A DNA stretch of 64,000 nt, from the NCBI GenBank assembly GCA_964247055.1, contig OZ176054.1, forward strand, positions 1,488,001 through 1,552,000. Direction: 5' to 3'. Shown here piece by piece: positions 13,665 to 60,700 of the stretch. The stretch is from Paragordius varius. Lineage: Eukaryota > Animalia > Nematomorpha. The position numbers and the translations under genes were made by a program. The notes under the pieces were generated by a model. That model was not told the DNA's origin. It worked only from the letters and a program-made list of their open reading frames with translations, and searched no databases. How positions within the stretch are numbered: position 1 is the stretch's first letter; each line of letters starts with the position of its first letter.

Positions 13665-14111
13665 ATTTTAAGTATAGTAAGGAAATCAATTATTAAGCAA
13701 CAATACCAATATTATTTATCAATACACATACATATCCATTCGATTATTCATTAAAACAAAAAATTTCTATTTTTAGTAAATTAATTATTGGTGATCGTTT
13801 CATTCCCAATTTAGCAATCAATAAAACACACACACACACACACATACACTAAAATATAAATATTTTTTAATATATAATTACATACTTCTCATGAAATATA
13901 TCTATTTATGATGTTAAAAATTCGAAATTTCTAAATATAGAATTTTTTTTATCAAACCTTATCTATTTACAATAGGGGAGGAGGGGGTTACATATTAAAA
14001 AACAAAATGTTTCAATACTTCTCTTACATCCTATAAATTAACTTAAAACTATCCTCAATTTTATTTTTGTATTTTTTACACCTTTAATAGGAAATTATTT
14101 TTTTTAATACA

Positions 14112-17100
14112 ATGGCGAGTAACTTAGTTCTCCATATATTTGCTTTGATATGTTTCACTAAATTAATAATGCCGGGATTGTCGGATTTCGTTGGTAAATA
14201 CAAAATTTGTCAAATTTTATTAAATCATAAATATAATATTTTTTTACTTTCTAGTTTATACCGACTTGGATACTGGAACCTCTGAATCGATTCAAACGAG
14301 TACATCAATTAATTAAATTTTTATATATTATGTTTTCTGATTATTTTATTACTGATATATATTTATAGCACTGGAATTGTATGAAAATCAAACAGGTAGT
14401 CATATGTAAAATACTTGAAATAATTTGTAACATTCCATTAGATTACCATTTTTTTTGAATTATATTAAAACAAAAAAGATTAAAAAATATTATCAAAATA
14501 AATTGCACATTATGTGAAATGAACTGCAGATTTGTTCCATTTTATAAGGATTTCGAAATAGGGATGTTAGGCCGAATATTAATCAAACCATATTTTAGGG
14601 AAAAATTAATTGAACGAACAATTATAAACATAGTGATAAATAAAAATCTTAGCTGGCAGTATAACTGTATAGACATACAGGTATATATACATATTAAAAC
14701 CCAAATATTAGAAACAGCAGCTGGGTATAAAAAAATGGGTGTGTAAACCAATCATTATAATCATGTTTTTAACACATTTATAAATATAATATTTTCATAA
14801 TCTGAATGATGATAAAATAATAATTAAATTATCAAAATAGATGAAAGTCTTAATATAACCCCGTTTCCCAAAAATAAAAATAGGGATTAGAAATTAAAAA
14901 ATATGACAACATATTTTCTAGTTTGTTAATTATAATTACCGTATAGATTGGGCTATTTAAAAAATTCATAAACAGCGGCAAAAAAAACAATAAGTTTAGA
15001 TACGGGATAATTTGATAAAATCTATCATTGGTTATAATTACATTATATATTAACGTTTTATATAATTTAATTATTAATATAATATATATACATATATTAG
15101 AATTAATGGAAAAAAGTAATGTTTTTTCTTAATTCTTTTCTTAGATTACTAAAATACGGACAAAACGTAAAAATATAAAAAAAATCTAACGGACAACCCT
15201 ATTTTTTTAAACCAAAATTTATCCATTAAAAATCATTTAATTAAAATGGTAAAATACATGATTAATTATGTTACCAATTTTCATATCTATTTTATTTGTC
15301 TTTTAGAAAAAATATTTGTCCTTATATTTTTACGTTTTGTCCGTATAATTTCCATTTTTTCATAATATAATTTTTTATAATACATAGTCGATCGATGGAA
15401 CACTTCTCTCAAAAGTTTATTATATTTTTATTAATTGCAAATTAAATATTTGCCGTAGTTATAAATTTAATAATAATATAATATGATTATAAATTAGTTA
15501 ACGAGGATTTCATTATGCCCCTTCGTTATAAGATTTATTCGCTCGAAAATCGAGGTAGTTTTTCTTTTCTTTTTTAAATTACTTTTAATCATTCAAAATT
15601 AAATATTTTTTATTAAATTTATTTTTCCTCAAAAAAAGATATACAATGGTTTCCGAATCAGGTAATATATTTACAGAATACGCCTGGAATAATTATTGTT
15701 TAAATTGACTTTCTAATTAATAATAAGTTTTTCTAACAATATATATAATATTCTATAGCAATATCAATTTTACATATAATTTTTTAGTCCATAATTCAAT
15801 CAAGTTTATTTTATTATATTTCCTTGTTTTTTAATAAATAATATATGATTGATTTATACGTTTTGATTATAATTATTTAGTTTACAATTATTCCGATGCC
15901 GTTTTGGATGATTTAAGTAATTATTGACAAATATTGAATACAATAAAAACTTAAATAAAATGAAACATCAAAAGACTATCCCATACTTTTTAAACCTTAA
16001 TTTATTCCTGTATTATAATTTGTTTTCAATCGTAAAATATATAATTAATTGTTTCACCAATTTAGTTATATTTAAAAAATGTTTAAAAATAGTAAAGCGT
16101 CTTTTAAAAAAATATTTATTTTTATGTATTTACTTGTTGTTTGGATAATTTCAATTTCTGATGTATAATTAGTTGAGGATTTGCGAAAACTAAAAATCGA
16201 ATCACATTGCCGAACATACACGTTTGAAAGTAAATATTAATACCATTTACAGCTTAAATTCACCCTCAAACAATTCAAATTTATTCTAAAATAAACTGTT
16301 CCAATATTTAAAATTAACTATATTTTTAAAATATTATATGAAAATTTCGTTTAAAATTAATATAATGAAAAAATAATAAACTATGCTATAAAGTAAAATA
16401 TTTTATATTAATAATGATATATTTCTAACCGAAAACACATAAATATTTTTATGGTGAATGTGAATTGTTCAAGGGTGAATTTATGATGATTTTAAGCATT
16501 AATTTTTATTAAATATTAACCCATGTCTCATTATAACTATATTTTATTTTTATTTTTAATTTTTATATGCATTTTTGGCGCATAACAATATTCTGACTTT
16601 AAATTAGCATTTTTAAATAAATTTTATTTCGATAAATAAATTTATTATTTTTAGAAAATCTAATCAGTGAGGGAATGATGAATGGCTTATTAAGTAGATG
16701 TTCATTTTCCTAAACAATACTTTTAAAATTAATTATTTTAATTTTTAAATGTAGTTAAAGAAATATGGAGCATGTACACTTTAGGTAAATATTGTGGAAA
16801 AAAATATTTTATTTTTAATTTTAATTGTACAGGAATCCCTGATATCAGCAACATAAAAAAAACTCATCTCAAAAATAAAACATGCTATTTTTTGGCTATC
16901 GGCGAATACACTGAAAAGGAAATTTCAAAAAATTTTAATTTAAGTATAATATATATATTATTACTTTTTAAAATGGAATAATTCAAATTCCAATATTTAT
17001 TTGTATTACCTTCTCCATATTTAGCATCCTATAAAGCTACCTTACAAATTAAGGATGGTAACTTATTTTGTTATACAGTAAAAAAAATAAAATTATACGG

Positions 17101-20100
17101 TCAAAACGAAAAAATTTAAGGACATTTTTTATAAAATCCACCATACTTTTCTAACTGTGATTATTCCCGCACAATGATTTAATTACCGTGGTCAATTATT
17201 TTTAACAATTTGAAAATCTATTATTTATTTCAGAAGATTAGTTATATTTAATAATAATATTCTGATAAAATTATTTGTCGTTAAAATTTAAGTTTCGTCT
17301 GCATAATTTCAATTTTTAATTAATATATAATTATTTTATCATTCATTTATTTCCACCAATAGATAAAGAATATTACTACGTGATTCGCAATTTCACATAT
17401 TTGGGTAAAATTAATTTTAACTTTTTTTTCAAACATTTTATTTCCAACATTTTTAAAAATGTATATATTATAGATTATCCACACCGAGCCAATATATGTC
17501 CTATTCAACAATCTCCATTGGATTACGCAACCTTTGGTATAATATTTTTATATCGATATTCGAAAATTTTTTATGATGATTATTTCAAATTGCCTTAACT
17601 ATCTTTTTAGTTAACAGGAATTCAATGTACAACATGCACCATCCTATAATTCATGCCAGGGGTAAACCTTATTCTAATTTTGTTAATATTAGTTATATAC
17701 CTGGGTTTCCCTTTTTTGTCCCATATAAGACTATATTCGCCTTTTAAAATTTTAATTCTATAAAAAATCAGCCAAGGTCAAAAAGTTGTTGATACATTAA
17801 ATTTGATAAAAAAAAAATTTTAAATTTTGAGATACTCCATTATTATAATCTTATATCAGTTTTTATCAATGTACCGTTTCCGCTAAAACATAATTAATTT
17901 TGTGTCAATTTTACCATAGCCTTATTTTCTTGTCGAAATATATGGTTTATAACGGTTTAAACCATTGTTAGATATCGGGCTTTGGGTTTTATGTATTCGG
18001 TGCGTTCATTTTGTTGAAAACTGCATAACAATAAGAAGATTGGACTTTCCAACACTTGAAATTTTCATAAATATCTATATAAAATATATGTATACATATA
18101 TATATATATATAGATTATAAACATTAATATATAATTGCCATAGATTATGATGCATTGATGGGACTTAGAGGTAATGCATATATCTTATTTCACTATTAAT
18201 TTTTTTTTAAATAAAATATTTATTTATCATGTCAATAGAACGATTGATTAGAGGTATAAAATTCAAAAATGAGAAATAATTATTTTTTCACTTGTCAATA
18301 TTTTAAAATAAATTATTATTATATAGGAAATAATTGGAAAAATTCTTCAAGAGGTAATTTAAAATTTATATAATATCGTTCCTTATTTAACGCAAAAACT
18401 AATACATATCTAATATTTTTAGCATTTCCAAACGAAAATTTTGAGATAACTCTCTTTTACAATCTGCATTACTTTCCACATCAAGGTACTTATTTTATTA
18501 TTTAAATTTCTTGATTATATATATATATATATTATTTATTTATTCCTTATTAGAAATGTTACCCAATTTTAAGGTAAAAGTTGTAATTTTAAATCAATTA
18601 AAATATATTTTATTAAAACAGTCAAGTTATGAAACACGTATGTATCTGACCCCTATTTTCATATATTTCATTTTTTATATATATACTTAAGGATTTCGGA
18701 TTTAATTAAAACCCATAGGGATCACAACCTTAATTTAAGATCATGTAATGCTCTAAAAATTTATTTACCCTTATAAGCTTTTTAATGATATGTATTTTAT
18801 ATTAAATCCAGAAAATGATATATTTTTTTAATATTCATATTTTTATTTGCAGTTGGTCAATTTTATAAAATGCATGATGCAGAAATAACAAATTCCCTTT
18901 TATAATCAAAAAATAATTTCGTTTTTTCATCGGGGAACATTCGAGATTATTGAATTGAAAATGATTTTTTTTGGTTGTGAGCTCAAACTATTTATGCCAA
19001 CTTAATTTAACCTGTTTTTTATAATTTAAAGTTTTACTATCACAAAAAATATCGTTTATATTAATAAAAAATATAGATATTTTCATTTTATTAAAACCAA
19101 CTATTGCTAAAATTTTATTATTATTGTATTTAGTTATCAATTATACGGAATCCGTTATGAAAAATCTAAGTAATTTGAAATAATTTTATTAATTAATTTT
19201 AAATTATATTATATTTACATATAGCTAAACATTCACATTCACCCTATTATCAAAGCTATTATTTTTCAAGTGATTTAATTTTTAAACATTTATATGCTAC
19301 TTTATATTTTAACCCAAAATTAACGCTTATTTTATTTTGCAGAACGTTTTCCATCCCAGGGAAAGTTGAATGGATCACAAAGTAATATTGAAACCAAATT
19401 TAACAAAATTTAAATTTTGGATTTATGGAGTTTTCATAAAACTATTTTTTTATATCCTTTTACTTATCATATAGTACAAGAAATATCGCAATTATATGGT
19501 AAAATATTGAAATTTATTCACTTATCTATCAACTATCAATGCTTTTCATTCGCTATTTAGATATGTTTGCTAATGAGCTGCAAGAATTTACAAAAACTCC
19601 AAACGCACAAAATTCAGAAAACAGAACATGTTATTATTTAACGTTTGGGCGGAGCATTGATGACCCCTTACCTAAATATTTTTCCAACCGTAGAGGTTAA
19701 TACTTACATTTTATTAGTCGCCTTAATTGAGTAAAATAAGTTTTACTAAAAAATATATTTATAAACGCATTTGTCGTATCTTATGAAAAAAACCAATTAA
19801 AATTTGGATATAATCTTTTCTCACAAAAAAATATTTATCAAAGTTAATAATTTTACCCGATTAATTTAACTATTAGATTCGTCATCATTTTTTGACTAAT
19901 AAAAGCTTAATTCTTATAATATTAAATAACTTTAATATCTGTAGATCTTGTCAATAAACTGTCGGAATTACGGACGGAATCTCTGAAAAAAGGTATAATA
20001 TGAGATTATTGTCCTTTCTTCCAAAATATAAATATATTATTAAATTTGTATAGATACCCCTTACGATTACATTGTTCGGAAAACGACATACCAAGGTAAC

Positions 20101-23100
20101 TCTATTTAAATCAACATATATCTATTATATAAATTTTATTCATTTGTTTTATGTAAATTCAACCGAAAAATATTTTATAATTTTCTAACACTATCAATTT
20201 TACAGAAGAAACACATATGCCAAAATTGTGCCCAATCTCATTGTCGCCCAATATCAATAATTCTAATAAAGGTATATATTTGTTTAAAATCAATATTTTA
20301 AAAATAATATGCAATAACCGCCTTGAACTTGAATTTCAAATTAAGATATTTATACCATACAATATATAATGTTTAAATCCGTAATATTTATTTAAAATAA
20401 ATTTTTACTTTTAAAAAGATATATGCTTGAATTAGAGGCGCCCCACAAATTGCTTAACTGTCGCATTTTTAGAAAATAAAAAAAGAATACGAAAACAATA
20501 CACACTATTATTTTCCATTTACTTGTTATTCCGTTCCCAAAAACAGTCGTAAATGAAAATATTAACCTTTAAGAACCAATTATTTTACTTTATATTCCAT
20601 CAATAAAATGAAAATAATTTAAAATTTGACTCTTTATCGAACAACTAATGTGGTCTTCTTAGAATCCAAACAATAGATATATTTTTCTGGCCTAATTACA
20701 AAATTTTGATTTTTCTCATTTAACGCATGGGACACCGCTTACAGTTTGCGCATAGAAAAATACGTTAGCCTGCTACCTTGTTATTGGGTTAACCTTAAAT
20801 TGGGCTTCATTACAAAATTATATATATATTTTTCAAATTGTCATCGAAATTTAAAATATTAATCATAATTAATTAATTGTTATATTTATGCTATGTTAGA
20901 TCATTTGAAAATACAATTAAAATCAAATATATTGCCGACAATGCGTCCGAATGCCAAAACACATGGTAAGTATTTGAAAGTTTGAATTTCCAAAATAAAA
21001 ATATATATGTTATAAAGAAATATTAAACACCTAACGGGAAATTATATCCCATCTATTAGAGTAAACCGCTAATATTAAATTTACTTACGTTATACGGCCA
21101 ATATTAGGCATTTAAGGCCCCCCGCCAGGTTTAATGCGGTTTATAGCCTAATGTCCGGCGCTTATTTTAAAAATCATTTTCGCAATTTATTCTTTAAAAA
21201 GAAGTCAATACAATGTATTAACATTACCATAAAAATATATATATTTTTGATTATTTGTTAAATCAAATATCCATAATTCCAAAAATACATAATAATACTG
21301 TCGTTCAAAAACGTATTGTTTGATATCCATGACGGATGGTCAATAAGCTAATAAAATAATTCACACCTCTGTAATATATTTTATAAATAAAACATATCAA
21401 ACACTAACTATAGAACCTCTTATCAAAGTAGTGTGACTTAAAAACTAAGAATTTGATGATATGAAAATATTTAATGTAATTGTCTATATATATAAAAATT
21501 TAAAAATTCATCGAAAAAGACGAAAATTTAAGTTTAACCCTGATTCATATCAAATTAAATATATATATATTTTAGATTCCAAGGAACTTAGGAATCTCAA
21601 AGGTAATCAAATAATTTTTTAAATATATATTTTTTTAAATATTTTTTTTAATTTAGAACGTCTAATCACAGGTAAAAAATATATTCAAATGGAATTCTTT
21701 TCTAATTTTTCGTATTATAATGTATCGTAATTTAATAATAAAAAACCGTAATAATCCCAATAATAATTTATTTGACACTATAAATGCTTTCTATATTAGG
21801 AAATAATTGGAAAAATCAATCAAAAGGTATTATATTATGTTAATTATTTAAAATTTTTTACAAAATATGAGGATTGTGTTTATAATATAAAATAAAATAG
21901 TTTTAATATTATATATATATAAATACTTTAAAGCTTCACCCAACGTAAATTATGTAATAACCCTGGCCTACAATATACATTACTTTGAAAACCAAGGTAT
22001 AAATACCTTTATTTTTTTCGTTTTGTCGCAATATTATACCCTAATATTTTTATTTACCTTTTCTAGAACTCTTGCCTGAATTTAACGTAAGATTAAATAA
22101 ATTTATTTAAAACAATTTTAAATTTATGTCCCTACAGTCTAGTTATGAAACACGTAAGTTTATTTAGATAATTAAAAATCTTTCAAAATATTCCGTTTTA
22201 TTATATTTGAAATATAATGATTCAGTTTGGATTACATGTAACATATAACAATGTGGTCAATTAATTTTGTAAAATAATGAAATGTTAAATAATTTTGCAA
22301 CTTAGTTTATCATCTTATATGCAAATCCCGGGGTCCTCCCAATTTTACAACTAATAGAGCTCATATTTAACTTCAGACTTTTAATTATCCAATATTTTTA
22401 ATAATTGAAACAAAAACATGAATTTAAATGATATGAGTTATAAAATTCTTAAGGCTGCTGGCATTATACCATAGCAACTTATTTAATATACTCTAATTGC
22501 ATATTAAAAGGATAGCTATGTGTTATCTTTATTGCTATTTTGAAACTTAAATATGTAACTGTTGAAATTGTTTTGCCTCACTAAATATTTTAAAAAATTT
22601 GTAGTTATTATATTAATCAAATTTTTTGCTCATTACAAATTAATTCCGCCCATCATTATTTAAAAAGAATAATGTTATATTTCGCTTCAAATTGGGGTTA
22701 CTAAATACCCCATAATAATTTAATTTGGTTTTTCAAAAAAAATTAATAAAACGGTCTCAATTTCAAATTAATATTTAAAAAAATTTGATTTTGATGAAAA
22801 AATATATATATCACTACTTCGACGCCATTTTTATTCAATTTTTAATATTTTAAAGGCTATTTATTTGAATAACATCTAAAATTTAAACAAAATGAAAAAG
22901 AAGTTTGTTTGCATTATATTTGATAAATTGCTAAATTTTCACTTTTGAGTTTTACCTTACAATATGTAATTTCAAGTATTTTGAATAAGATTTTGTTATA
23001 TTTCGGTTCATCATTGTTATATAAGTATAAATTTTTGTCATGGCTTCAATTCCTTCCATATTTTTTGAAGTATTCGATTTTAAACAAGCCTGGGGTATCC

Positions 23101-23355
23101 AATTACCCCAATTTTAATCAAAGGACGGAAATGACTGTGCTATATCCATGTTGTGTTTATAAAGTCGTATCATTTAAATAACATCTTTTTTTGTTATTAG
23201 CAAAGAATGTTTACGGTTAACCATATCCAAAATATTTTTAAATATTAAATAATGATATATTTCTTTTAACCGTTTTAGTTATCAACTATACGGATTCAAT
23301 TATGCCAAACATAAGTAATTATCAATTTATATAATAAATTATTATTTATTTAATA

Positions 23356-23393
<38 letters not shown>

Positions 23394-23752
23394 GATGAAT
23401 CAGTTTGGCTCTATTATCAAACCTATTATTTTGAAAGTAATTTTAGTTTTTTTTCAAAAAATTTAAATCGAATATAACACCATTTTTTTTATAGAACGCT
23501 TCCCTTCTCAAGGAAGACTCAATGGTTCTCAAAGTAAAAATTTTTTATTTTACCTTAAAATCAAAGGGTTTATTTTTCATCTTTTAAATAGCATTTTTAC
23601 AAAAACTCGAACCAACTTTTATTAGAAATATAACATGATTTACATAAGCGCCAAAAATACTAATTTTTATTAAAATTTACACTTATTTATGGGCGGAAAA
23701 CGCTAGAGATAATTATTTAGATTAAACCAATAGGTTCCCAAAACGTATAAAC

Positions 23753-23795
<43 letters not shown>

Positions 23796-26700
23796 ATTTG
23801 TACTTCAAGAGTCTCCTCAATACTTTAAATTCGCCCTCGAACAATTTAAATTCACCTGAAAATAAATTATGTTTTTTTAAGCAGCTAATAAAACTGATCA
23901 TTAGTAAAATAAATATTCTTATGCCATAATTTATTATTTTTCAGTACTATATTAATTTAAAACAAATTAAAAAATATAAAAAAATATAGGTAATTTTTAA
24001 TTTTTAAAAACACAAAATTAATTTTAGACTGAATTTAAATCGTTTAAAAACTAACTTGAATTGTTCAAGGGTAAATTTGGATTATTTAAGGGTGAAATTT
24101 GAATTGTTCAAGGGTAAATTTTAACTCTAAATGGTATATTCAAGATAGAGAGGGAGCGCTTTCTAAAAAATAAAATGAAAAGTACCGATTTTAGGTATGG
24201 TAAATTATATCCTGATAAAATTATCAGAAAAATATCATAATTTTCAGGGTCCCTAGCAAAATTTAAAGTCATCATGGGCCCCGAATACAATTTATGTCAT
24301 AACTCATTCGAGATTAGGAAAAAAGAGACTTTAAACACATAATAATAATATTTACTTGAGTAATTATTTTTTTATTGTTATTTAGTAAATGAAATCTCAT
24401 TACTATATGGTAATATAATATATTTCATAAATAATCATCTCATGTAAAAATATACCTAATGGTATGTAAATGGCAACAATATATAGATTATAATGCTGAC
24501 ATGCAAAAGGAAGATGATCTTCTGATCAAATACAACCCTCAAAGTACAGAAAACAAAACTTGTTATTATATGACGTTTGGGCGCAACATTAATAAATCAT
24601 TGCCTTACTATATTTCTAAACGTGATGGTTAGAATTTTACATTAACTTTTGTTTTTTTGGGATTAAAAATTAAATTTTTCAAAATTTAAAAGTTTTACAA
24701 ATTTTCCATTGAATCTCAAAAAATTGTATCCTACATCGTAATTAAAAACCGTTATTAATGTTTTATTTGGTAAAATTTCACATAATAATTATATTTTTTT
24801 GTGTAGATCTTCTTGCCAGATTACGAAACCTGCGCACTGAAACTCTTCAAAAAGGTACGCTCTTATTTTTGTTTCAAATATATAATATTTTAATTTATTG
24901 TCAATATTATAGATATGCCCTATGACTATATCGTTCGTCATACAACCTATCTCGGTAAGAATTATATTGTAAATAAAATTTTTTATTTAATTTTGGGCAT
25001 TTTAACAGATCAATCCTTTATTCCCAATCTATGCCCCATTCAAGTTATTGAAGAAACATTGCCATCCAATAAGACATCTAATAAAGGTATGTTCATTGAC
25101 TTTTCATTCATTTTTTAATACTTTAAATAGGTTTTAGAACTTAAATTTATATATTTAATATAGTAGTTTCAGCAGCAGCTCAAAATATAAACGTAACTGC
25201 AAATTCCACAAAAGGTCCATATAATTTGGATCAAATATCCGAACCACAAATCCTTAGTAAAACACTACTGGAATATATTTATTAAATATGTTTTAAAACT
25301 ACGCAGTTTATACTATTTAATAAATTAACTGATAAAAATATGATTGTGTTTTTAAAATAAACTACCAACATTCTTAAAAATTTTTGAACTTGAAACTTAG
25401 TGTATATTTAGTTTAGTTGATTTTCCGATCGATATTTAGATGGCTCAATCGAATCAACGATGGTAGCCTTGCCCTCAACTATATCACCAGAAAACAAAGC
25501 ACAAAGTAATATTATAGTATAAACAATTTTAAGAGTTAAAATTTTGAAATTAATACGGTTGGTGTTCTAATAAATATCATAAGTTCCCAATCCCTTTTTG
25601 ATAGTTATAACAGGGCAATTAAATATACGACGTTCAATAATTTAAATTTCATTTTGAATGAGGCCTAAAACTATGTTTATGTAGTTTATTTATAAAAAGT
25701 ATCAACATAACTTGATTTCCTGGGATTTTGACCTGTTAATACACGGTATGAATCTTATGCATAATGTCCTCTACGGTCTAGCCAATCAATTATAACACAA
25801 CGAAATCATATTTTATTAATAGGAAAAATTCCATTTTTCTATCAAATGTGTTTACTAATCTTCTTTTTTCAAAAATTATTCCCTTTTTTGAAAAATTATT
25901 CCTTAATTTATCCTTTTATTAGTTTAAGTTATGTTAAAATTTCTACGTTTATTCGTTTAGTGGTGATTGCAGGTAATTTGAATCAGATTTAATTATGTTG
26001 TCGTTTGGTATTATAATTGAATGTCACTCTACAAATAAATAATTTCTTTATTTTCCAGGGGCGGCGCTTACAGGCATAGCTGGTAAATATTGTTTTTTTG
26101 CTCTTTATTCCAAACAATTACATAACAGCAATTTTGCATTGCACTGTATTTAAGAGTATGGAATAGAGATGTACATTGGTATCCCACAATCATTTATTAC
26201 AGTATTCACCTTTTTATTAGCCAATTCAAATTATTTTTGGCCATTTGGCTATACATTAATGTATGGATTAAAATTAACATAGTTAAAATTAAACATTCTT
26301 TTCCAATCCTACAACATTTAATTTGTTTATATTATTAATATGTTATAATCATACGTTCCCGTATTCCTAATTGAACAGCAATAAATGTGCATATTATCTG
26401 TATATCGAAATTTTTACTGTAATATATGTATATGTATATGTATAGCTACGGGTGTAGCAATCGGGACAGCGACCGGAACAGCTGCAGCCTCAGCTGGAAC
26501 CGGTCTTGTGGTTGAAGGGGGAACTGCTTTGGCCGCTGGAGCTGAGACCGCTTTTGAATCTCTCACAGCTGGAAGTGAGACCTCTTTAGAATCTCTGACA
26601 GCTTCTTCAAGTTCTTCAAGTTCATCCTCGTCCTCTACGGCGGCGCTTACACAAGCCAACAGAGTCATCAGCAAGGGAACTACCAAAGTAGTAGTTTCAT

Positions 26701-29700
26701 CTTTAGCCGTGCCCCCGACTGCGTATGGGGCTTATCGAGCCTCCGCTCATTCCTCCCATTCTGAAGGCGGTCCATCTCATATCAGTAGTTCGGAAGTACA
26801 TACCCATATTCACACTGAAGCACACGAGGAACAACCTGAGGCCCCTATTACCATTAACAAGTTACAACCTAACCCAAATTCTATACGGATTGAACATGAA
26901 AGACTGCTTGGTGGAGGGACAGACGGTCCCAGTTCTCCGACCAGTGAAAGTCAATCATCGGATTCTTCGCAAACTCAGCATCAATCCAATGTTCCTTCCA
27001 AAAAACGACCAGCTGAGGACAGACCACAAGGACGTAAGTCATTTTGAAATAATATTTTGAAAATTTCATTAATATTTTTTATACCCTTTTAGCTAAACCG
27101 AAATCACAAAAATCAGGTAAAATTTTAAACTGGAAAATATAGCTGTGAAAAAAAATTTAAGAGTTATATTCAATTACTAAACATAAAATACCAATTATTT
27201 TATAGATTCCGAGTCTTTGGAATCCTTACTTACCCGAAAAAATTCCCGGACTCCAGTTAAAGCCCCTGTAAAACCTGTTAACCCTGCCTCTGTCCCCACC
27301 CAAATACATGAGCCTTCGACATCTTCCGTTGTCCAACCCTCTCATTCTAATGCTGCGTCTAAACAGTTTAAAAGACCTGTACAATCCACTCAAAATTCTA
27401 ATAAACCCAGACAACAGGAATCTAAACTTTTGCAACAACCAAATGTTTTAAAAGCCTCTAAACCAAGGCGGCCACCAACTTCAAATCGTGTCATTCCGGA
27501 AGCTGTGGAATCACCGAGCATCCCAGACGCGCCTGATACACCAACAACGTTTTCCTCGAATCCAGGTTTATTTTTTTAAAAATAAAATAGGATGGTGTAT
27601 TACAGGGGTCTCCAACATGAGACCCGATAAAAAAAAATATGGTCACCAAGATATTAAAATTTAAAAAAAAATTATAAAAGTTTCAAATGGCAAAGTACTT
27701 AAGTGTAATAAAGTAGTCATATTTTTTATCTTTTTACAGTTTGAAATCCAATAAACTATTTAATCATATTCATAACTTTCGAGGTGGCCTGCCAGATTGA
27801 TAGACACCCTTGCTGTATAAGATAAGGGGTGTCAATCCATATATATCCATATACAACTACTTTCGGCAAATTCCATAATATATATTTCCTTGAATGAAAC
27901 ATAGATGAAAACTTGCGCCCTGATGAAATTTTAGGAGAATCAAACCAGCCTGAAGGTATGCTATAATTCTAGTTAAATGACATATAGTTATTATACTACC
28001 CGAATTTTTAAAACCCAAACAGAATTTTTAATATTTAGTCATTAAAAATGATAAGCCTTTAGTGGGAACTGTCTTTTTTAAAAATCTACATTGTGAGAAG
28101 AGTGAAATAATATTTTAATGACAAAGCTGTTCCTTGTACAAATACTACTTAAATTTTCAAATTTCATTGAATATTTAGATTTAATAATTTGATAAAATTC
28201 CATTTTTGTCCTCTTTAATAAAAAATGATAAAATAAATTCACTAGTCGACTTTCAAATTATTCGCGGCGGATGAATTTAAAAACTTTGTATATTCAATTA
28301 AATTTATAATGATATGATGATTGTAAAAATGATTCATTGTTTTGAATTTAACATACCGACCCCAAATTAATCTCAACTGATTTCTTATATAAATATTTAT
28401 TTTATATTTCCATCATTTAATGTTAAATATGGCAATATATCGTTAAATGCAAAGAGTCACTATATTAACTATATTTATTTTTGCATATTTATAGAACACC
28501 AAAATGTTAAAGATTGTAAGAATACAAAAATTATTTTATTTAGAGTATCAATTATTTGTATATTTAGCATTACAAAATGTTAAATCCATTTTTTAGTCAA
28601 AAACATATTTTTTCAAGGACGCAATATTTTTTATCCATACGCAGCATTATTTCCAGCAAACTTATTTTTTCAGTCAAACGCAACTTTTCAAAAGGACTAC
28701 TGAAAATTGTGTTTGCTTGAAATAATGTTGCATTTGCTTGTAAAATGTTGCTTTTAGAAAAATGATATATATGTCATAAATGTGTAATAAAACTATTATC
28801 CTCATATTATCAATAATTTTTATAATGTAAACAAAATTTACAGTTTTTTTTAAAATCAATTATTTTCTGTTAATTGCTATAAATTTTTTTTGGTGCTTAT
28901 TACTAAATTTTGTGGCATTATATATATTTCATATATTATTTTTTATTTACATTCAAGGGCTAAGAAGTAATTATTTCTGCTAATATATTTATAATGAATA
29001 CAGTAGCGAGAGTTATTGGTGATTTCGGCTTTTAGAATTGGCTAAAAATGTAAAATATATAACATGTCAGTTGGCTTGTATAAGATTATAATTTTTAATA
29101 TTGACTTGATTGATAAATAAAATATTGCTTAAATGCTAAAAGACATGCAAGTTAAAAACCCTTTTACCCAATAAAAATTCTGAACTCATCAATAATGTCT
29201 CTCGTTACTGTTTACACAAGTTAATTTTTGATAGAAATTCAATTTTAAATAATTTTAAATTTAAATATAGTAAAATTTATTTCCATATTAATTAACCTTG
29301 TATAAATGTTTTACAATATCCATATATACAGAATCTTTCAATATAAATGGTGAGTCAGCGTTAAATATTTATATATATATATATATATTTATATTCAAAA
29401 TTAATATTTTTTGTTAAATATCTCCTTTTATTAATTAATTTTTATTTTCATTTACAAAACCAGTACCTAAGAATCAAATATTACCCACCGAAAACGGTAA
29501 TTTGATAAAAAATATTGTGGTCATATTATAGACATTAAAAATACGGAGAAAACGTAAAATAAAAAATATTATTTCAAAAGTAATTATATTTTTAAATTTT
29601 ATTTATTAATAAAACTCATTGTTTCAAAATGCAAAATATGAAATATAGATGTATATTGGTAATACAATAAATTAATATTGTACAATCGTAACTAAATTAT

Positions 29701-48940: not shown

Positions 48941-50720
48941 TTATTCTTTGGTATATTTTTTGTTTGAGTGAATGCGTTTTAGCAGATTGTCATCATTTTT
49001 TAAAATATTGTAGAAGTATTCACAAGAATTTGTCAAATTATATTTGACAGATAAAACGGCCTTTAAAGGTTCAACATTTAAATTTGATTTTTCCGATGTC
49101 CACACCTGATTTACTGTGGAAAAAACGCGCTCAATAGCAGCGTTGGTTCCAGGTAAAGATAGTGAAAATTCCACAATTTTTTAAATATTATTGTATGTAA
49201 TATAGTTGGCTTCAAAATGATGAAATATTTCCAACCATTTATTTTCTACTGTAATTTTTTTTGTCCATAATTTAAGTTTTTCATTTTTGATATATCTTTT
49301 AACTAAGAATTTTTGGGAACAGTTATAATCAAATGATTTTTGAACATCGCACCAATTAAATTATGGTTTTTAGGTTATCCAATGAAAATGATCAATTTCA
49401 TTGCATTGCCAGTCTTTCAAATAATCTTTACAGTTTGTAAACATTTTTATATGGTACAGGAGATCTTGGCGATTTATTAAGCCTTTTTTTTTAATTATTT
49501 ATATTGCGGATGTTTAATGGTATAAAATTATTTTCTAACCTTTCTTGACATTGGAATTAGGTTCTAACTTAATTAACTAATTCAATTGCCGAAATTTTGT
49601 CACCTTCTATCAATTTAATAACATTTTGAAAAAGAGAAGCTTTATTATTTAGGGACTCTAACCATATTTTTGAAGAATCACTTTCAAAAAACTTTTCCAA
49701 AGTTGTAGGACATTTGTCCTGTGATAAAAAATAGGATATTAAAGGATTATACATATTTAAAATTCTTTTGATTGGCAGAAGAGCTAACCAACGAGTTTTA
49801 CAATATCCAAGCATTTTTTCATATTAAACTTCTGCATTTTCACAGAATTCTTTAAGCGTTTCAACGCGTACCGTGTATATATAAAAAAGATATATATTTT
49901 AATAACTAAATTTTCCACATCTAGGGGTAGCAAATCAGTAGCTGTTTGAATAGCGTTGTGTAAATGCCACCCAACGCCAATAATGTTTTAGTTAAGATTA
50001 TCTGTAATTTATGAAAAATATTTTTCCCCTCCTTGTTTTCCACCGAATTTCGTAATGGTATCAGCGAAATGCGATGATTTTGCCTTTTAAATTATTATTT
50101 TCTAAAATATTTATTATTGAAGTAAAACATATGTCAGAATTCACACCGGGTAGCGAAATATAACCTAAAATTTTAATTACTCCAGTTTCAGGATCATCTA
50201 ATTAAAGTGGGAAATAATTTTGTTTCCTAGTGAGATGCATCAAAGTATAGCGATATGAAATTCATTTTCAGTAAATCTTTTTGTATTTCAGAAAATGCAT
50301 GTGGCGAAAGGACATTGCATTCAATGGCTTCAGCCCTTGTACGGGTACATATAGATTTTTTATTGAATAAGGTGCGAATAACATGTGAGGTACAGTCCAT
50401 AGATCTGAAGGAATGATTGTGATTAACGGCGTGAAAAGATAACACGCCCTCAGCTAGTGCCAAATTCATTTGTTCCTCTCCAAAAGCGATTTTTCGAAAA
50501 AAATCGCTCATTTTATAAGATGATGCCCCCATATCTAAACATTTTTTATGTTTCTGTGTTTCCATATGCTTTGTAATATCATGCTTGCCGCCATGTGCTA
50601 GGGTGAATTCCCCCTCGCACATAAGACATTTAACAGATGATTCATTCTTCGTTTTTTTGATAAAAGGTAAAATCTTTCATTAATTCATCGTTGAATTTAC
50701 AACCTCTTTTTGTGCTCATA
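48941..50720 (-). pseudogene. Near full-length Blackjack-type hAT transposase with frameshifts and stops
   Basis: ORF-track fragments in order: LAHGGKHDITKH, AEGVLSFHAVNHNHSFRSMDC, FDAS, KTRWLALLP, LPGTNAAIERVFS..KYNL. Confidence 0.88.
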
Positions 50721-54077: not shown

Positions 54078-54299
54078 GATCTAAATTTACTATGAATCAG
54101 AAAATGTTATAGAAATTTATAAAAAATGTAGATTTATTTTTGTCAATCTCTCAAAACCGAAATAATCCTGATTAATATTATCAACAAAATTTCTAGGTGA
54201 TTTTTCGAAGAAACTATTACTTTTCTTTTATATTTGTTGGGGTCGTTAAGAAGCTTGCAATCATAAATGGGGTCGGGAACTACAAAAGTTTAAGAAGCC

Positions 54300-55058
54300 C
54301 TGATTTAAGGTTTGCAGACGATACCACTCTTATAGCTGAAAGTGTAAATGATTTAGAATTGATCGAAGAGATTCGAAAAGAAATATTGAGTTATGGTCTT
54401 ATGCTTTAACCCTAACAAAACCAAAATATTATGTACTGGAGAAAAGCCTACAATTATTATAGAGGGAGTGGAAATAGAAATAGTTCAACAGTTAACGTTT
54501 TTCGGCGCAGTAATTTCAGAGGATGGGTCTTCAACTCCTGACATCAGAAAGAGAATAGGATTGGGTAAAGAAGCGATGACCAAACTAATAAAGATTTGGA
54601 AAAACAAAAGCGTAGGAGTTAAAACCAAAAAAGGATTACTCTACTGTTTCGTTCTCCCTGTCACCACATATGGATGTGAGAGCTGGACTCTCAGAAAAAG
54701 AGACAAAGAAAGGCTCATGGCTTTCAAAAGGAGCTGCTGGCGTAGGATGCTAGGATACACCTGGAAGGATAAAATTAAGAATGGAAATCTAACTACAGAA
54801 ATAAAGCCTAAAACAAACATCCTGGTAATAATTCTAAAAAGAAAGTTAACATATTTTGGTCATGTCATGCAATCGAATTCTCTAGAGAAAGATACAATGT
54901 TTGGGAAGGTAGAAGGACAAAGGAAACGAGGCTGACCACTGATGAGGTGGTTGGATATGATAAAAGAGGAGACTTAAATGACATTACGATCTCACTAGCG
55001 GTAAAAGATAGAAGAAAGTGGAAAGAAATATTTACTACTTAGAAATAACCAACCAACC
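54300..55058 (+). mobile_element. 5'-truncated non-LTR retrotransposon, RTE (BovB-like) clade, RT C-terminal part
   Basis: LRFADDTTLIAES, LNPNKTK (frameshift), YGCESWTL, YFGHVM, LEKDTMFGKVEGQRKRG..RWLDMI. Short (AACC)n tail at ~55047-55058. Confidence 0.88.
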
Positions 55059-57766: not shown

Positions 57767-60700
57767 ATGGTCTCCCCCTTAAAAAAAATTGGTACCCATG
57801 ATGGTAAGTTTCATTGTGATGAAGTCTTGGCATGTTGTATGTTAACGATTTTAAATGAATTTAAAAATCATGAAATAATAAGGTAATTTAATATATATTA
57901 ATTTTAGATCAAGGAAAATGGAAATTTTGGATACATGTCACATTGTTGTGGATGTTGGTGGTGTTTATAGTTATGAAAATAAACGATTTGACCATCATCA
58001 AAAGTAAAATAATTTTTGAAAATATAGAACATTTTCACTCACGATGGCTGATATAAATTATAAATTGAAAGAATATAATAACATACGATTGAGTAGCGCA
58101 GGTCTAATTTATGGACACTATGGCGAAGAAGTGATCTCAACTATTTTACCAACCTTATCTAATCCAGAATTGTTACAATATGTTTATCAAAATGTTTACG
58201 AAAATTTTGTGCGAGAAATTGATGCCATCGATAATGGGGTCGAAGTTTGTGATTGCAGCTTTAAAAAGTTTTTTCTTAATATACATACACGCATATTGAA
58301 AGAGTTGGAATAGGCATTTAACCGAATATAATAAAAAAATGATTCAAAATGGAAAATTTTTTTATTCTTAGTTTTGCTCAAAAAATTAGATTTTTGGCAT
58401 TTTTTAATAACTTCACTGCAAAACAATTTTAAAAGTTATAAGCATCTTATAATGTTAAAAACATGCGCGATTTCTTTGTGCCAATTTTTTTTCCAGACCT
58501 ATATTAGCTAACATAAAAAATATGTCTGTTTATAATTAAAATTTAATAAAATTTTATTTTTATTACATTTAATTCCCTGTTTGTTATATTATTTTCATAC
58601 CTTAAAAATACTTGTTCGAAAAAAGATACGAATTCAAATTAAGTTTTTTAATAACATGTGCCTCCACATAAATATTTTAAAAAAGATATTTTATTTCTAA
58701 TTTTTTTATCACGTAATATTTTGATAAATACTTTTTAATAATATATTATCAATTTTTATTATTATCGTACTTTGTAAATTATCTATAGAATAACCATTTA
58801 TATAGTTTTAGTGTTAAATAAGTTTTTATAGTTGGTTATAAAATTTGTCTTCTTTTCAGATATCTCATCAACACGAATGTTAGCGCTAGAGTAGGACGTC
58901 TAAATCCGCCCTGGAACAATGAAACCCTTGATCCAAATGTAATTATTTTTTTTATGAATGCGCTATAAGTGTCGCCTTAAATTAAAATAATCGGTCAAAA
59001 TATTTTCATTGAAGATGAAAATTATAAAAATTTATCGATTAACTCCTTTATTCAAAAAACATCTAGGTATTTTTACATTTTTGTGCAAAATCTTTTGTAA
59101 TAATTTTGCAACATAATCATAAATAAGAATTTGGCAAAGATTTTTGACAACTTTTTTAACCAATAGTTCTTAAATAAATCATTAAATGAATTAATATATA
59201 ACTTCTTTTACAGCATAAAACTAAATATTTTATAAATATATAATATTAATCTTTCAAAAATCATTGATGGAAAAAATTAAAAGTTTTTAAAAGGTACATT
59301 TTTCAGCACAGCCTTTCGATGCCATTTTACTATGTTCTAATGGGTATATAATTATGTGGATTTTCATACCACATAATAAAACTTTTTTTATTTTAATATC
59401 CGATTAATAATAGGTGAGATGTTGACTCTTAAATATGAAAAATATTTGCATTTTTGAAATTTATTCATTGGATGGTTTGAAAAGGCACATGACTTCATTT
59501 ATAAGTTGTAAGACTGTTTTTTTAACATCTTTTTATGCTTTAAAAATATAACGTTAAATTTGTATCTTTATATAGGTACAATTTACAAAAGCAATGAATC
59601 TTGTTAAACAAGAATTTATCGATTGTGTCAAACACTATGCCCAAGTTAAATGGCCTGCCATTGACATTTTAAAAAGAGCAATGTCATCTAGGTTACAAGT
59701 AATATTCATTTTAGTTAGTTTGGTTTTTTGCTTTAGTGCATATCTATCACATATAAATCGTAAGATAATATAAAACAGGAAATAAGTTGGAAACAAATAA
59801 ATATATTCATCTAGAATTTTAAGTGTAACATAATACCATAACGTCGCCTTGCTCAATTATTTGATTAAAAAATTTGTCCTTACAATGCAAAAATGTCTAA
59901 TTTTTAGCACAACACACGAAATTTTTTAAACGACTTTAATAATTGCTTGATGTTTGTTTATATGATTATTTTTATCTAGTAATTAAATGTTTCATTGATA
60001 TATACCATTTGCACTTTAAGAGTGTACTTCAACACTTCAAGTTGGTTCATCAACATTTCTAGTTGATCCTTGAACATATCATGTTGGTCTTTGAACACTT
60101 TTGGTCCTTGAGCACTTCAAGTTCATCCAAAATTTTTAAATTTTTATCTAACCATAATTTTTGGAAGTATTCTTTATTTTATTATTTTTAACCCTAATTT
60201 TCTTTATCTATTATATATTTATTCTTTAAAATAAATATTTTTATTCAAAAACCCTTTAAATGTTTTTAATCATAATTTTGAATAATAACCCGGAAAACTT
60301 ATATATTTTTTAATTACGTGTTAAAATCTTATAAATATCTAAAAAAAATTTAAGGAAATCAATAAAGATATACGGTTTCTCAATGATTAATAGTAGATAT
60401 TGATTTAAAATTTATTTTAAATATTATTAAATAGGTTAAAGATGATAAAATAGATGAATGATATATGATTTGATTGATATTAAAAACAAATCAAAAAAGT
60501 CTAAGCAACTTGAATTGTTCAAGGACTAACTTGAGGTGTTTAAGGACCAACTTGAGGTGTTCAAATACCAACTTAAAGTGTTCAAGGGTCAACATGATGT
60601 GTTCAAGAACAAACGTAATGTGTTCAAGGACACTCTTGAAGTGCAAATGGTATATATGGTCATCCTTATTTAAATATAGCATTTACATAACAAATCCACC

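Follow-up and report, generated by a model that had tools for sequence, protein, structure and literature searches.

The locus described here lies in a window of 64,000 nucleotides, the whole stretch of Paragordius varius DNA that was analysed, and raises the question of what kind of protein is built from three tandem cassettes of 15 very short exons each. A sequence-only reading had proposed that each cassette may encode a degenerate von Willebrand A (VWA) domain. Our reconstruction of the gene and its comparison with a second copy suggest that the locus is probably an intact, selectively maintained and lineage-restricted type I membrane glycoprotein gene, whose product carries three copies of a compact alpha/beta module of unassigned fold.

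The gene model was reconstructed by hand, and its exon borders and reading frame were checked by script. It comprises 53 exons on the + strand, from the ATG at position 14112 to a stop codon ending at 27579 (window numbering), and 52 GT-AG introns interrupt a single open frame with one stop that specifies a product of 1074 aa. Most introns are short, with a median of 77 nt, and 46 of the 53 exons measure at most 81 nt. Intron phase is strikingly uniform, with 49 of 52 introns in phase 1: the exon 5/6 junction is in phase 0 in units A, B and C, all other introns being in phase 1, and the exon 5+6 pair (20+16 nt or 23+16 nt) is frame-neutral only jointly. Composition does not explain this bias, as phase 1 accounts for only 54% of the coding-sequence AG dinucleotides. 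Exon 1 (14112-14193; GT donor, 88% identity with the paralogous copy) carries the start codon and a hydrophobic N-terminus resembling a signal peptide, and is followed by a short phase 1-1 segment, exon 2 (14255-14299), which has AG/GT borders, is open in frame and is retained in the paralog.

Downstream of these exons, the cassettes occupy 14369-25256, and this span, as originally claimed, runs exactly from the first base of unit A exon 1 to the last base of unit C exon 15. Unit A (14369-17661; 209 aa) consists of exons at 14369-14395, 15101-15115, 15388-15414, 15498-15554, 15639-15661, 15788-15803, 15881-15916, 16173-16229, 16655-16693, 16755-16784, 16833-16943, 17025-17057, 17363-17404, 17474-17536 and 17611-17661, all of them retained in the paralog. 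Its exons 2 and 3 were found by a scan for frame-compatible segments with splice sites retained in the paralog. An open segment at 14562-14666 (96-105 nt), considered as a fusion of these two exons, was rejected because the paralog carries frame-breaking indels there; the true exons start at 15101 and 15388. Unit B (18144-20965; 223 aa), with the same exon lengths in the paralog, has exons at 18144-18170, 18239-18253, 18327-18353, 18423-18485, 18554-18573, 18622-18637, 19134-19169, 19225-19269, 19343-19381, 19475-19498, 19561-19695, 19945-19992, 20054-20095, 20206-20271 and 20900-20965. Unit C (21576-25256; 238 aa), whose exons match those of the paralog in length or deviate by 3 or 6 nt, has exons at 21576-21602, 21657-21671, 21800-21826, 21934-21996, 22067-22086, 22138-22153, 23279-23314, 23392-23436, 23495-23533, 24386-24409, 24487-24627, 24807-24854, 24913-24954, 25009-25086 and 25164-25256. 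AG/GT borders were present throughout all three units.

The rebuilt model confirmed that the units agree in exon number, order and phase, as the sequence-only reading had stated, and the peptides which that reading quoted were located at the positions it gave. Exon lengths (nt) are 27, 15, 27, 57, 23, 16, 36, 57, 39, 30, 111, 33, 42, 63 and 51 in unit A; 27, 15, 27, 63, 20, 16, 36, 45, 39, 24, 135, 48, 42, 66 and 66 in unit B; and 27, 15, 27, 63, 20, 16, 36, 45, 39, 24, 141, 48, 42, 78 and 93 in unit C. Conservation of length likewise held up: seven of the 15 are identical in A, B and C, and the others differ by multiples of 3. Identity is 57% between B and C but 26-30% between A and either of them, which bears out the earlier statement that B and C are more similar to each other than to A. 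Local alignments of the joined units scored z = 29 (A-B), 23 (A-C) and 84 (B-C) relative to shuffled sequences, so that, judged by sequence similarity, homology of the units is far beyond chance. In an alignment of six units (A, B and C of both paralogs), the exon borders are in register. Comparing unit halves by hhalign gave no match, which argues against an internal duplication. The 15-exon, nearly all phase-1 layout would already have been present in a single ancestral unit and been copied along with it, and the ectodomain would represent one module in three tandem copies that arose by ancient duplication.

Within each module, ~165 residues (exons 4-14) form a conserved core that is rich in Tyr and Asn and contains a conserved N-Y-S/T sequon and a conserved Cys pair, located in a Thr-Cys-Tyr motif (exon 11) and a Cys-Pro-Ile motif (exon 14). 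Exon 15 and exons 1-3 of the following unit form a variable linker between cores. Across the six-unit alignment, every exon from 2 to 14 includes one or more invariant residues, mainly Tyr, Phe, Leu, Cys, Gly, Pro or Asn. Units A, B and C contain 7, 6 and 9 sequons and 3, 2 and 2 Cys residues, respectively. Following unit C, a juxtamembrane stalk exon (25440-25505; AG/GT, phase 1-1) shows the lowest paralog conservation of any exon (61% nt identity). Two micro-exons with AG/GT borders (25961-25972 and 26059-26082) open a Gly/Ala-rich hydrophobic segment, which ends in a large exon (26446-27033; acceptor AG at 26444-45, donor GTAAGT at 27034; 95% nt identity with the paralog) that also encodes a Ser/Ala/Thr-rich tail and includes a 33-nt tandem duplication (26535-26603). 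A basic micro-exon of 24 nt (27093-27116; AG/GT borders, retained in the paralog) and a last exon with a Pro/Ser/basic tail (27206-27579; stop TAA at 27577-27579, AATAAA at 27581) complete the gene. The segments at 14634-14666 and 23201-23215 are candidates for additional micro-exons.

The protein is predicted to begin with a signal peptide, to continue through the three units and a membrane segment rich in Gly and Ala, and to end in a Ser/Pro-rich tail of ~300 aa. Exon 1 shows the highest Kyte-Doolittle hydropathy in the protein (2.04 in a 19-residue window), and the sole internal hydrophobic peak (1.86, again over 19 residues, around aa 735) is formed by the two micro-exons and the start of the large exon. 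Upstream of this segment there are 23 sequons and downstream there are 0, the large tail exon included. Such a product would display glycosylated modules on linkers above a membrane helix of Gly/Ala-zipper-like character, with a disordered Ser/Pro-rich tail and its Lys/Arg-rich patch extending into the cytoplasm, and its likely role would be at the cell surface, as a coat, adhesion or receptor protein.

Relatives of the module were sought within and beyond this genome. Exon 11 has only six copies in the 110.5-Mb genome, and the same number was found for exon 4. A six-sequence profile of exon 11, the longest exon, had 0 matches among 1.84 billion protein representatives and gave only compositional or noise matches to PDB chains (giant-virus Crov588, MANF), and a protein atlas returned no usable match for this exon. 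Pfam searches with eight exon pieces gave a single noise match (ARMET_N at E 0.2), and the large tail exon (195 aa) had no match in Pfam or in a word search; since no query exceeded 46 aa except the low-complexity tail, these searches could have overlooked remote homologs and Pfam families. At this level of sensitivity the module is without detectable relatives, and the family, as far as sequence comparison reveals, is lineage-restricted.

Whether the exon series belongs to a functional gene at all can be assessed from the second copy, which lies ~49 kb upstream, is intact with a frame of 1099 aa, and retains all splice sites. Between the paralogs, identity is 91% in exons (0.6% gaps) and 84% in introns (4.8% gaps), and all exon indels are multiples of 3. 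By dN/dS, units B (0.28) and C (0.25) are under purifying selection, whereas the values of unit A (0.61) and the tail (0.55) indicate weak constraint. It is thus hardly credible that the exon series arose by chance or belongs to a pseudogene in decay: although the gene model is known from genomic DNA alone and neither the exon-11 profile nor the tail-exon word search found a homolog outside the Paragordius varius genome, both copies keep more than 1000 open codons over 53 exons with every splice site intact, exon conservation exceeds intron conservation, and dN/dS is below 1. Protein variation through exon skipping is documented for the micro-exon genes (MEGs) of schistosomes, and a variation system of this type, in which combinatorial skipping of frame-neutral exons yields many surface-protein variants, would accord with the phase-1 introns, the jointly frame-neutral exon 5+6 pair, the abundance of exons of at most 81 nt and the predicted signal peptide. 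We nevertheless regard it as distinctly unlikely here, since exons 2-14 each keep residues invariant over six units diverged to 26-30% identity and purifying selection acts on units B and C, so that obligatory module parts fit better than optional cassettes; moreover, the product is a large membrane protein and not a small secreted peptide. The exons are probably spliced constitutively, and their frame-neutral design alone would not be evidence of exon shuffling.

The proposal that each unit is a degenerate VWA-type domain (Rossmann-like, three-layer alpha/beta/alpha) that has lost its MIDAS metal site draws on several resemblances to VWA and integrin I domains. The units are likewise extracellular, their size is close to the 174-position Pfam model, and a crude propensity prediction shows strand-like and helix-like segments alternating across ~165-200 residues in an order that is superimposable on that of VWA if one helix is absent. 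The reported absence of a DxSxS motif was borne out, as a regex search of both paralogs for D-x-[ST]-x-[ST] gave no ectodomain match. However, only four clear strand segments are predicted, and strand 1 of the units is amphipathic, alternating polar and apolar residues, whereas a true VWA strand of this genome is fully apolar and runs into the metal-site motif. Profile similarity was also lacking: exon pieces of at least 20 aa, too short for a strong negative, had no supporting Pfam match at E <= 10, and an HMM of the six joined units scored ~0 bits against the VWA exons of this genome, itself a weak test. A six-frame genome scan with PF00092 matched three other loci, one with a canonical MIDAS motif, and had no match in the micro-exon gene, where short exons limit its power. 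Unlike the micro-exon units, the genuine VWA domain of this genome lies in large exons and retains the metal-site motif. A word search seeded with the genome's own VWA exon, aimed at a deep VWA alignment, had no matches. Although each of these comparisons is a weak test, we consider VWA descent very unlikely, and the module would not be a member of this family. It is also unlikely that the units are not autonomous globular domains but an extended, heavily N-glycosylated, Tyr-rich repeat stalk. A stalk would suit the FoldIndex of the units, borderline and close to zero or negative (-0.07 to +0.08), the very short aliphatic hydrophobic runs, most so in unit B, and the 22 sequons in the 670 residues of the three units, and AlphaFold2 gave a pLDDT of 54 for the longest exon alone, a 44-aa fragment out of context that is uninformative either way. 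Against it stand the 12% of aromatic residues in the ectodomain, the Cys pair and the Gly, Pro and aromatic positions kept across 26-30% identity, the low dN/dS of units B and C (0.25-0.28), and the amphipathic patterns of the helix segments. Counts of hydrophobic runs did not separate VWA, SEA and unit sequences.

We favour a compact alpha/beta module, and its fold can be narrowed down only tentatively. Chou-Fasman-type propensities averaged over the alignment suggest the order strand, helix, strand, strand/helix, helix, strand, helix, strand, which fits the first half of a VWA domain and a two-layer ferredoxin/SEA-like sandwich equally well. The leading candidate, still a doubtful one, would be an alpha/beta sandwich of the two-layer ferredoxin/SEA-like type that carries a further helix-strand, SEA being a mucin-type extracellular domain. 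As a lead only, we take the first part of the unit (strand-helix-strand-turn-strand-helix-strand, with Gly-Ser after the turn) to resemble the SEA/ferredoxin-like order. Tandem SEA mucin ectodomains of the MUC16 type, and other ferredoxin-like SEA or SEA-like modules close to the membrane, would be similar in overall design: type I membrane glycoproteins in which alpha/beta modules of 150-240 residues, with few cysteines and many sequons, are repeated in tandem. Unlike SEA modules, however, the unit gives no profile signal and would continue into an extra helix-strand and a Cys-Pro loop. A genome scan with PF01390 matched seven other loci and had no match in the micro-exon gene. When the joined-unit alignment was compared with three SEA exons of this genome, hhalign gave a probability of 0.1% (shallow alignments, low power) and the unit HMM, also built on a shallow alignment, scored 0 bits or less, so that the SEA-like guess is without sequence support.

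Based on the propensity estimate and the conservation pattern, each exon may carry roughly one strand, helix or loop of the compact module. A fuller proposal, to which we give only a slim chance, is that the module is a folded, lineage-specific extracellular domain with about one secondary-structure element per symmetric phase-1 micro-exon, kept through triplication and gene duplication, in which either in-frame skipping remodels the surface protein or the domain was assembled element by element from micro-exons. Should the unit indeed fold, it could serve to ask how a domain copes with introns at nearly all borders between its structural elements, and why these introns share a single phase. 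A gene with its coding sequence mostly in exons of 12-81 nt would be missed or mangled by standard gene finders, and none of the public protein collections that were searched contains the product of this gene. If the organism is a parasitic hairworm, a two-copy orphan surface glycoprotein would be a candidate host-interface molecule.

Among known systems, the gene design most readily recalls the MEGs of blood flukes, described as genes with exons of 3-81 bp coding for secreted proteins (PMC10526429). As in schistosome MEGs, a signal-peptide exon is followed by symmetric, frame-neutral exons of very small size that make up most of the coding sequence, and both kinds of gene are lineage-restricted without detectable homologs; a sequence relationship between the two was not found. 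In contrast to the small secreted, anchor-free MEG products, the protein described here has 1074 aa, an internal Gly/Ala-rich hydrophobic segment and three conserved 2-Cys modules, and the gene differs further in its mostly short introns and in the invariant residues of every core exon. The locus would therefore extend the micro-exon design to another animal lineage and to a large, membrane-anchored and apparently structured repeat protein. With the phase 1-1 modules of animal mosaic proteins, which follow the exon-shuffling rule, the units share flanking phase-1 introns, and cassettes of this kind therefore duplicate in frame, giving the A-B-C triplication. Unlike in those mosaic modules, the introns within each module are here also nearly all in phase 1 (14 of 15 per unit).

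Reading the plus strand from 14000 to 28200 for exons and verifying the series by script, we obtained an unbroken run of short exons bordered by canonical AG/GT splice sites. The window is very AT-rich (G+C 21-26% across the three cassettes and their surroundings described below). The gene extends from an ATG at 14112 to a TAA at 27577-27579, with an AATAAA two bases past the stop, and its 53 exons and 52 introns encode a product of 1074 aa with a single stop. Most exons are minute (46 of 53 measure at most 81 nt, the smallest 12 nt), introns range from 48 to 1125 nt (median 77), and the minus strand of the interval holds no ORF of at least 70 aa. This striking gene structure is verified.

The sequence-only reading had described three tandem cassettes of 15 exons at 14369-25256, conserved in exon order, length and phase. 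Indeed, the first base of this interval is exactly the start of exon 1 of unit A (14369-17661) and its last base the end of exon 15 of unit C (21576-25256), with unit B at 18144-20965 between them, and a six-unit alignment of A, B and C from this gene and its paralog placed exon borders in register. Introns are phase 1 in 49 of 52 cases; the other three are phase 0, one per unit at the junction of exons 5 and 6, which are jointly frame-neutral in each unit. Exon lengths are 27, 15, 27, 57, 23, 16, 36, 57, 39, 30, 111, 33, 42, 63 and 51 nt in A, 27, 15, 27, 63, 20, 16, 36, 45, 39, 24, 135, 48, 42, 66 and 66 nt in B, and 27, 15, 27, 63, 20, 16, 36, 45, 39, 24, 141, 48, 42, 78 and 93 nt in C; length conservation thus holds strictly for seven exons, and the others differ, always by multiples of 3. 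A scan for AG...GT segments of compatible frame, free of stops and with intact splice sites at both ends in the two paralogs, located the second and third exons of A; at 15 and 27 nt they match their B and C counterparts, and exon 3 has a Trp and an N-x-S sequon in common with these. B and C are closer to each other (57% identity) than either is to A (26-30%), as claimed. The three are clearly homologous, local alignment of the joined units having given z = 29 (A-B), 23 (A-C) and 84 (B-C) against shuffles. The observation of three matching 15-exon cassettes is thereby confirmed in full and strengthened. Read by eye, the 48-nt intron 5/6 of unit B (18574-18621) is a multiple of 3 and stop-free in frame, such that its retention would add 16 residues; its counterpart in unit C is 51 nt long and has a stop.

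When exon 11 was searched against the complete 110.5-Mb assembly, a further gene of this kind came to light some 49 kb upstream (G000 contig 5:1438777-1454870, loci L007, L009 and L008 of this genome). This tandem copy has the same 53 exons in the same layout (signal, A-B-C, membrane, tail), with exon lengths equal or 3 or 6 nt apart, and encodes an intact frame of 1099 aa, its stop codon lying 25 codons later. All splice sites of the window model are kept, exons are 91% identical (0.6% gap positions) versus 84% for introns (4.8% gaps), and at a dS of about 0.17 Nei-Gojobori dN/dS was 0.41 overall, being lower in units B (0.28) and C (0.25) than in unit A (0.61) and the tail (0.55). Conserved splice sites and frame, the higher identity of exons and the dN/dS values together argue that the window gene is real and selected. 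Two further AG...GT segments, at 14634-14666 (33 nt) and 23201-23215 (15 nt, 100% identical between paralogs), are open and frame-compatible, with splice sites kept in both copies; each may be an additional micro-exon of the cassettes or a coincidence.

The layout of the product fits a type I membrane glycoprotein. Hydropathy (19-residue Kyte-Doolittle) has two peaks only, at the N-terminus (2.04) and near residue 735 (1.86), the latter being Gly/Ala-rich and encoded by two micro-exons and the first part of the large exon 26446-27033; the product has 23 N-x-S/T sequons, all of which precede this segment and none of which follows it. The tail is rich in Ser (20%) and Pro (11%) and holds a short Lys/Arg-rich patch (~26990-27116), which resembles a nuclear-localisation signal and extends over the last part of the large exon and a 24-nt micro-exon. 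Together with the Gly/Ala membrane segment, this patch raises the idea of a putative regulated cleavage freeing the tail. The cytoplasmic-tail exon also contains a 33-nt tandem duplication (26535-26603; 2.1 copies, 86% match) encoding a repeated Ala/Gly-Glu-Thr...Glu-Ser-Leu-Thr motif. Within the units, residues invariant in all six copies (mainly Tyr, Phe, Leu, Cys, Gly, Pro and Asn) occur at least once in each of exons 2-14 and are absent from exons 1 and 15; they include Thr-Cys-Tyr (exon 11), Cys-Pro-Ile (exon 14) and an Asn-Tyr sequon (exon 7). On this basis we read exons 4-14 (~165 aa) as a probable conserved core and exon 15 with exons 1-3 as a variable linker.

The same units had been proposed to be degenerate von Willebrand A (VWA) domains of alternating alpha/beta order lacking the metal-site motif. 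A Chou-Fasman-type propensity averaged over the alignment reproduced the alternation at a crude level only: helix in exons 1-2, strand in exon 4, strand or helix in exons 6-7, strand in exon 8, a turn-rich loop in exon 9, a short mixed strand/helix in exon 10, helix, strand and loop in exon 11, helix in exon 12, strand in exon 13 and a Cys-Pro loop in exon 14, with exon borders tending to fall between predicted elements. This order is compatible with the first half of a VWA domain, and equally so with a ferredoxin/SEA-like beta-alpha-beta-beta-alpha-beta sandwich with an extra helix and strand (SEA being a mucin-type extracellular domain). D-x-S-x-S is indeed absent from the ectodomain, the prediction contains no more than four clear strands, and polar residues alternate with apolar ones along the first of them, whereas the strand of the genome's genuine VWA domain is fully apolar and leads into a canonical metal-site motif. 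None of these points is decisive, yet several lean against a VWA reading, which found no positive support in the sequences. The genome's own VWA protein (L019:1492-2115, minus strand, contig 1), which retains that motif, carries the first half of its domain on a single exon of more than 200 codons, and ordinary domains of this genome are therefore not split into micro-exons.

For family scans and database searches single exons served as queries, and joined units were compared only with this genome's own sequences. Eight exon pieces of at least 20 aa had no Pfam match, a six-sequence profile (45 positions) of exon 11, the longest exon of each unit, found 0 proteins among 1.84 billion representatives and only noise among PDB chains, the protein atlas gave no usable match, and no match came from a word search with the 195-aa tail exon. 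In the genome, exons 4 and 11 each have six copies, only the known ones. An HMM of the six joined units scored ~0 bits against the genome's VWA and SEA exons, which were located by Pfam models and are much larger than unit exons; a comparison with three SEA exons by hhalign yielded a probability of 0.1%, and the two halves of a unit had no detectable relation. FoldIndex is borderline, so even the globularity of a unit is tentative, and AlphaFold2 on exon 11 by itself (pLDDT 54) says nothing for or against a globular fold. Our best reading is that the product would be an orphan surface glycoprotein with three alpha/beta modules, its exons spliced constitutively; if true, a globular fold split element by element would make the gene remarkable.

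Several introns of units A and C hold small inverted-repeat, MITE-like elements (15154-15346, 16250-16488 and 23819-24065). One between exons 2 and 3 of A has perfect 25-nt arms, and one family with 21-nt GAATTGTTCAAGGG-type subrepeats inserted independently in intron 8 of A and intron 9 of C. Rfam found no RNA family within the window. Downstream of the gene lie a hAT transposase remnant (48941-50622, minus strand; a weak Dimer_Tnp_hAT match, E 0.0011, below cut-off), a reverse-transcriptase-like ORF remnant (54197-54935, plus strand; no Pfam match) and a MYG1 exon (58044-58313, plus strand; PF03690, E 2.8e-19).

Because 54% of AG dinucleotides in the coding sequence are in phase 1, composition favours this phase; by a rough estimate it cannot yield 49/52 phase-1 introns, or ~21/22 independent positions. 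The all-phase-1 layout predates the triplication and has been retained since, because intron positions are common to units at 26-30% identity. Among the papers listed by a literature search, no paper that mentions Nematomorpha mentioned micro-exons as well. Micro-exon genes of this type have been described in schistosomes (PMC10526429). Distinguishing features of the window gene are the conserved two-cysteine module, the predicted membrane anchor and the tandem paralog.
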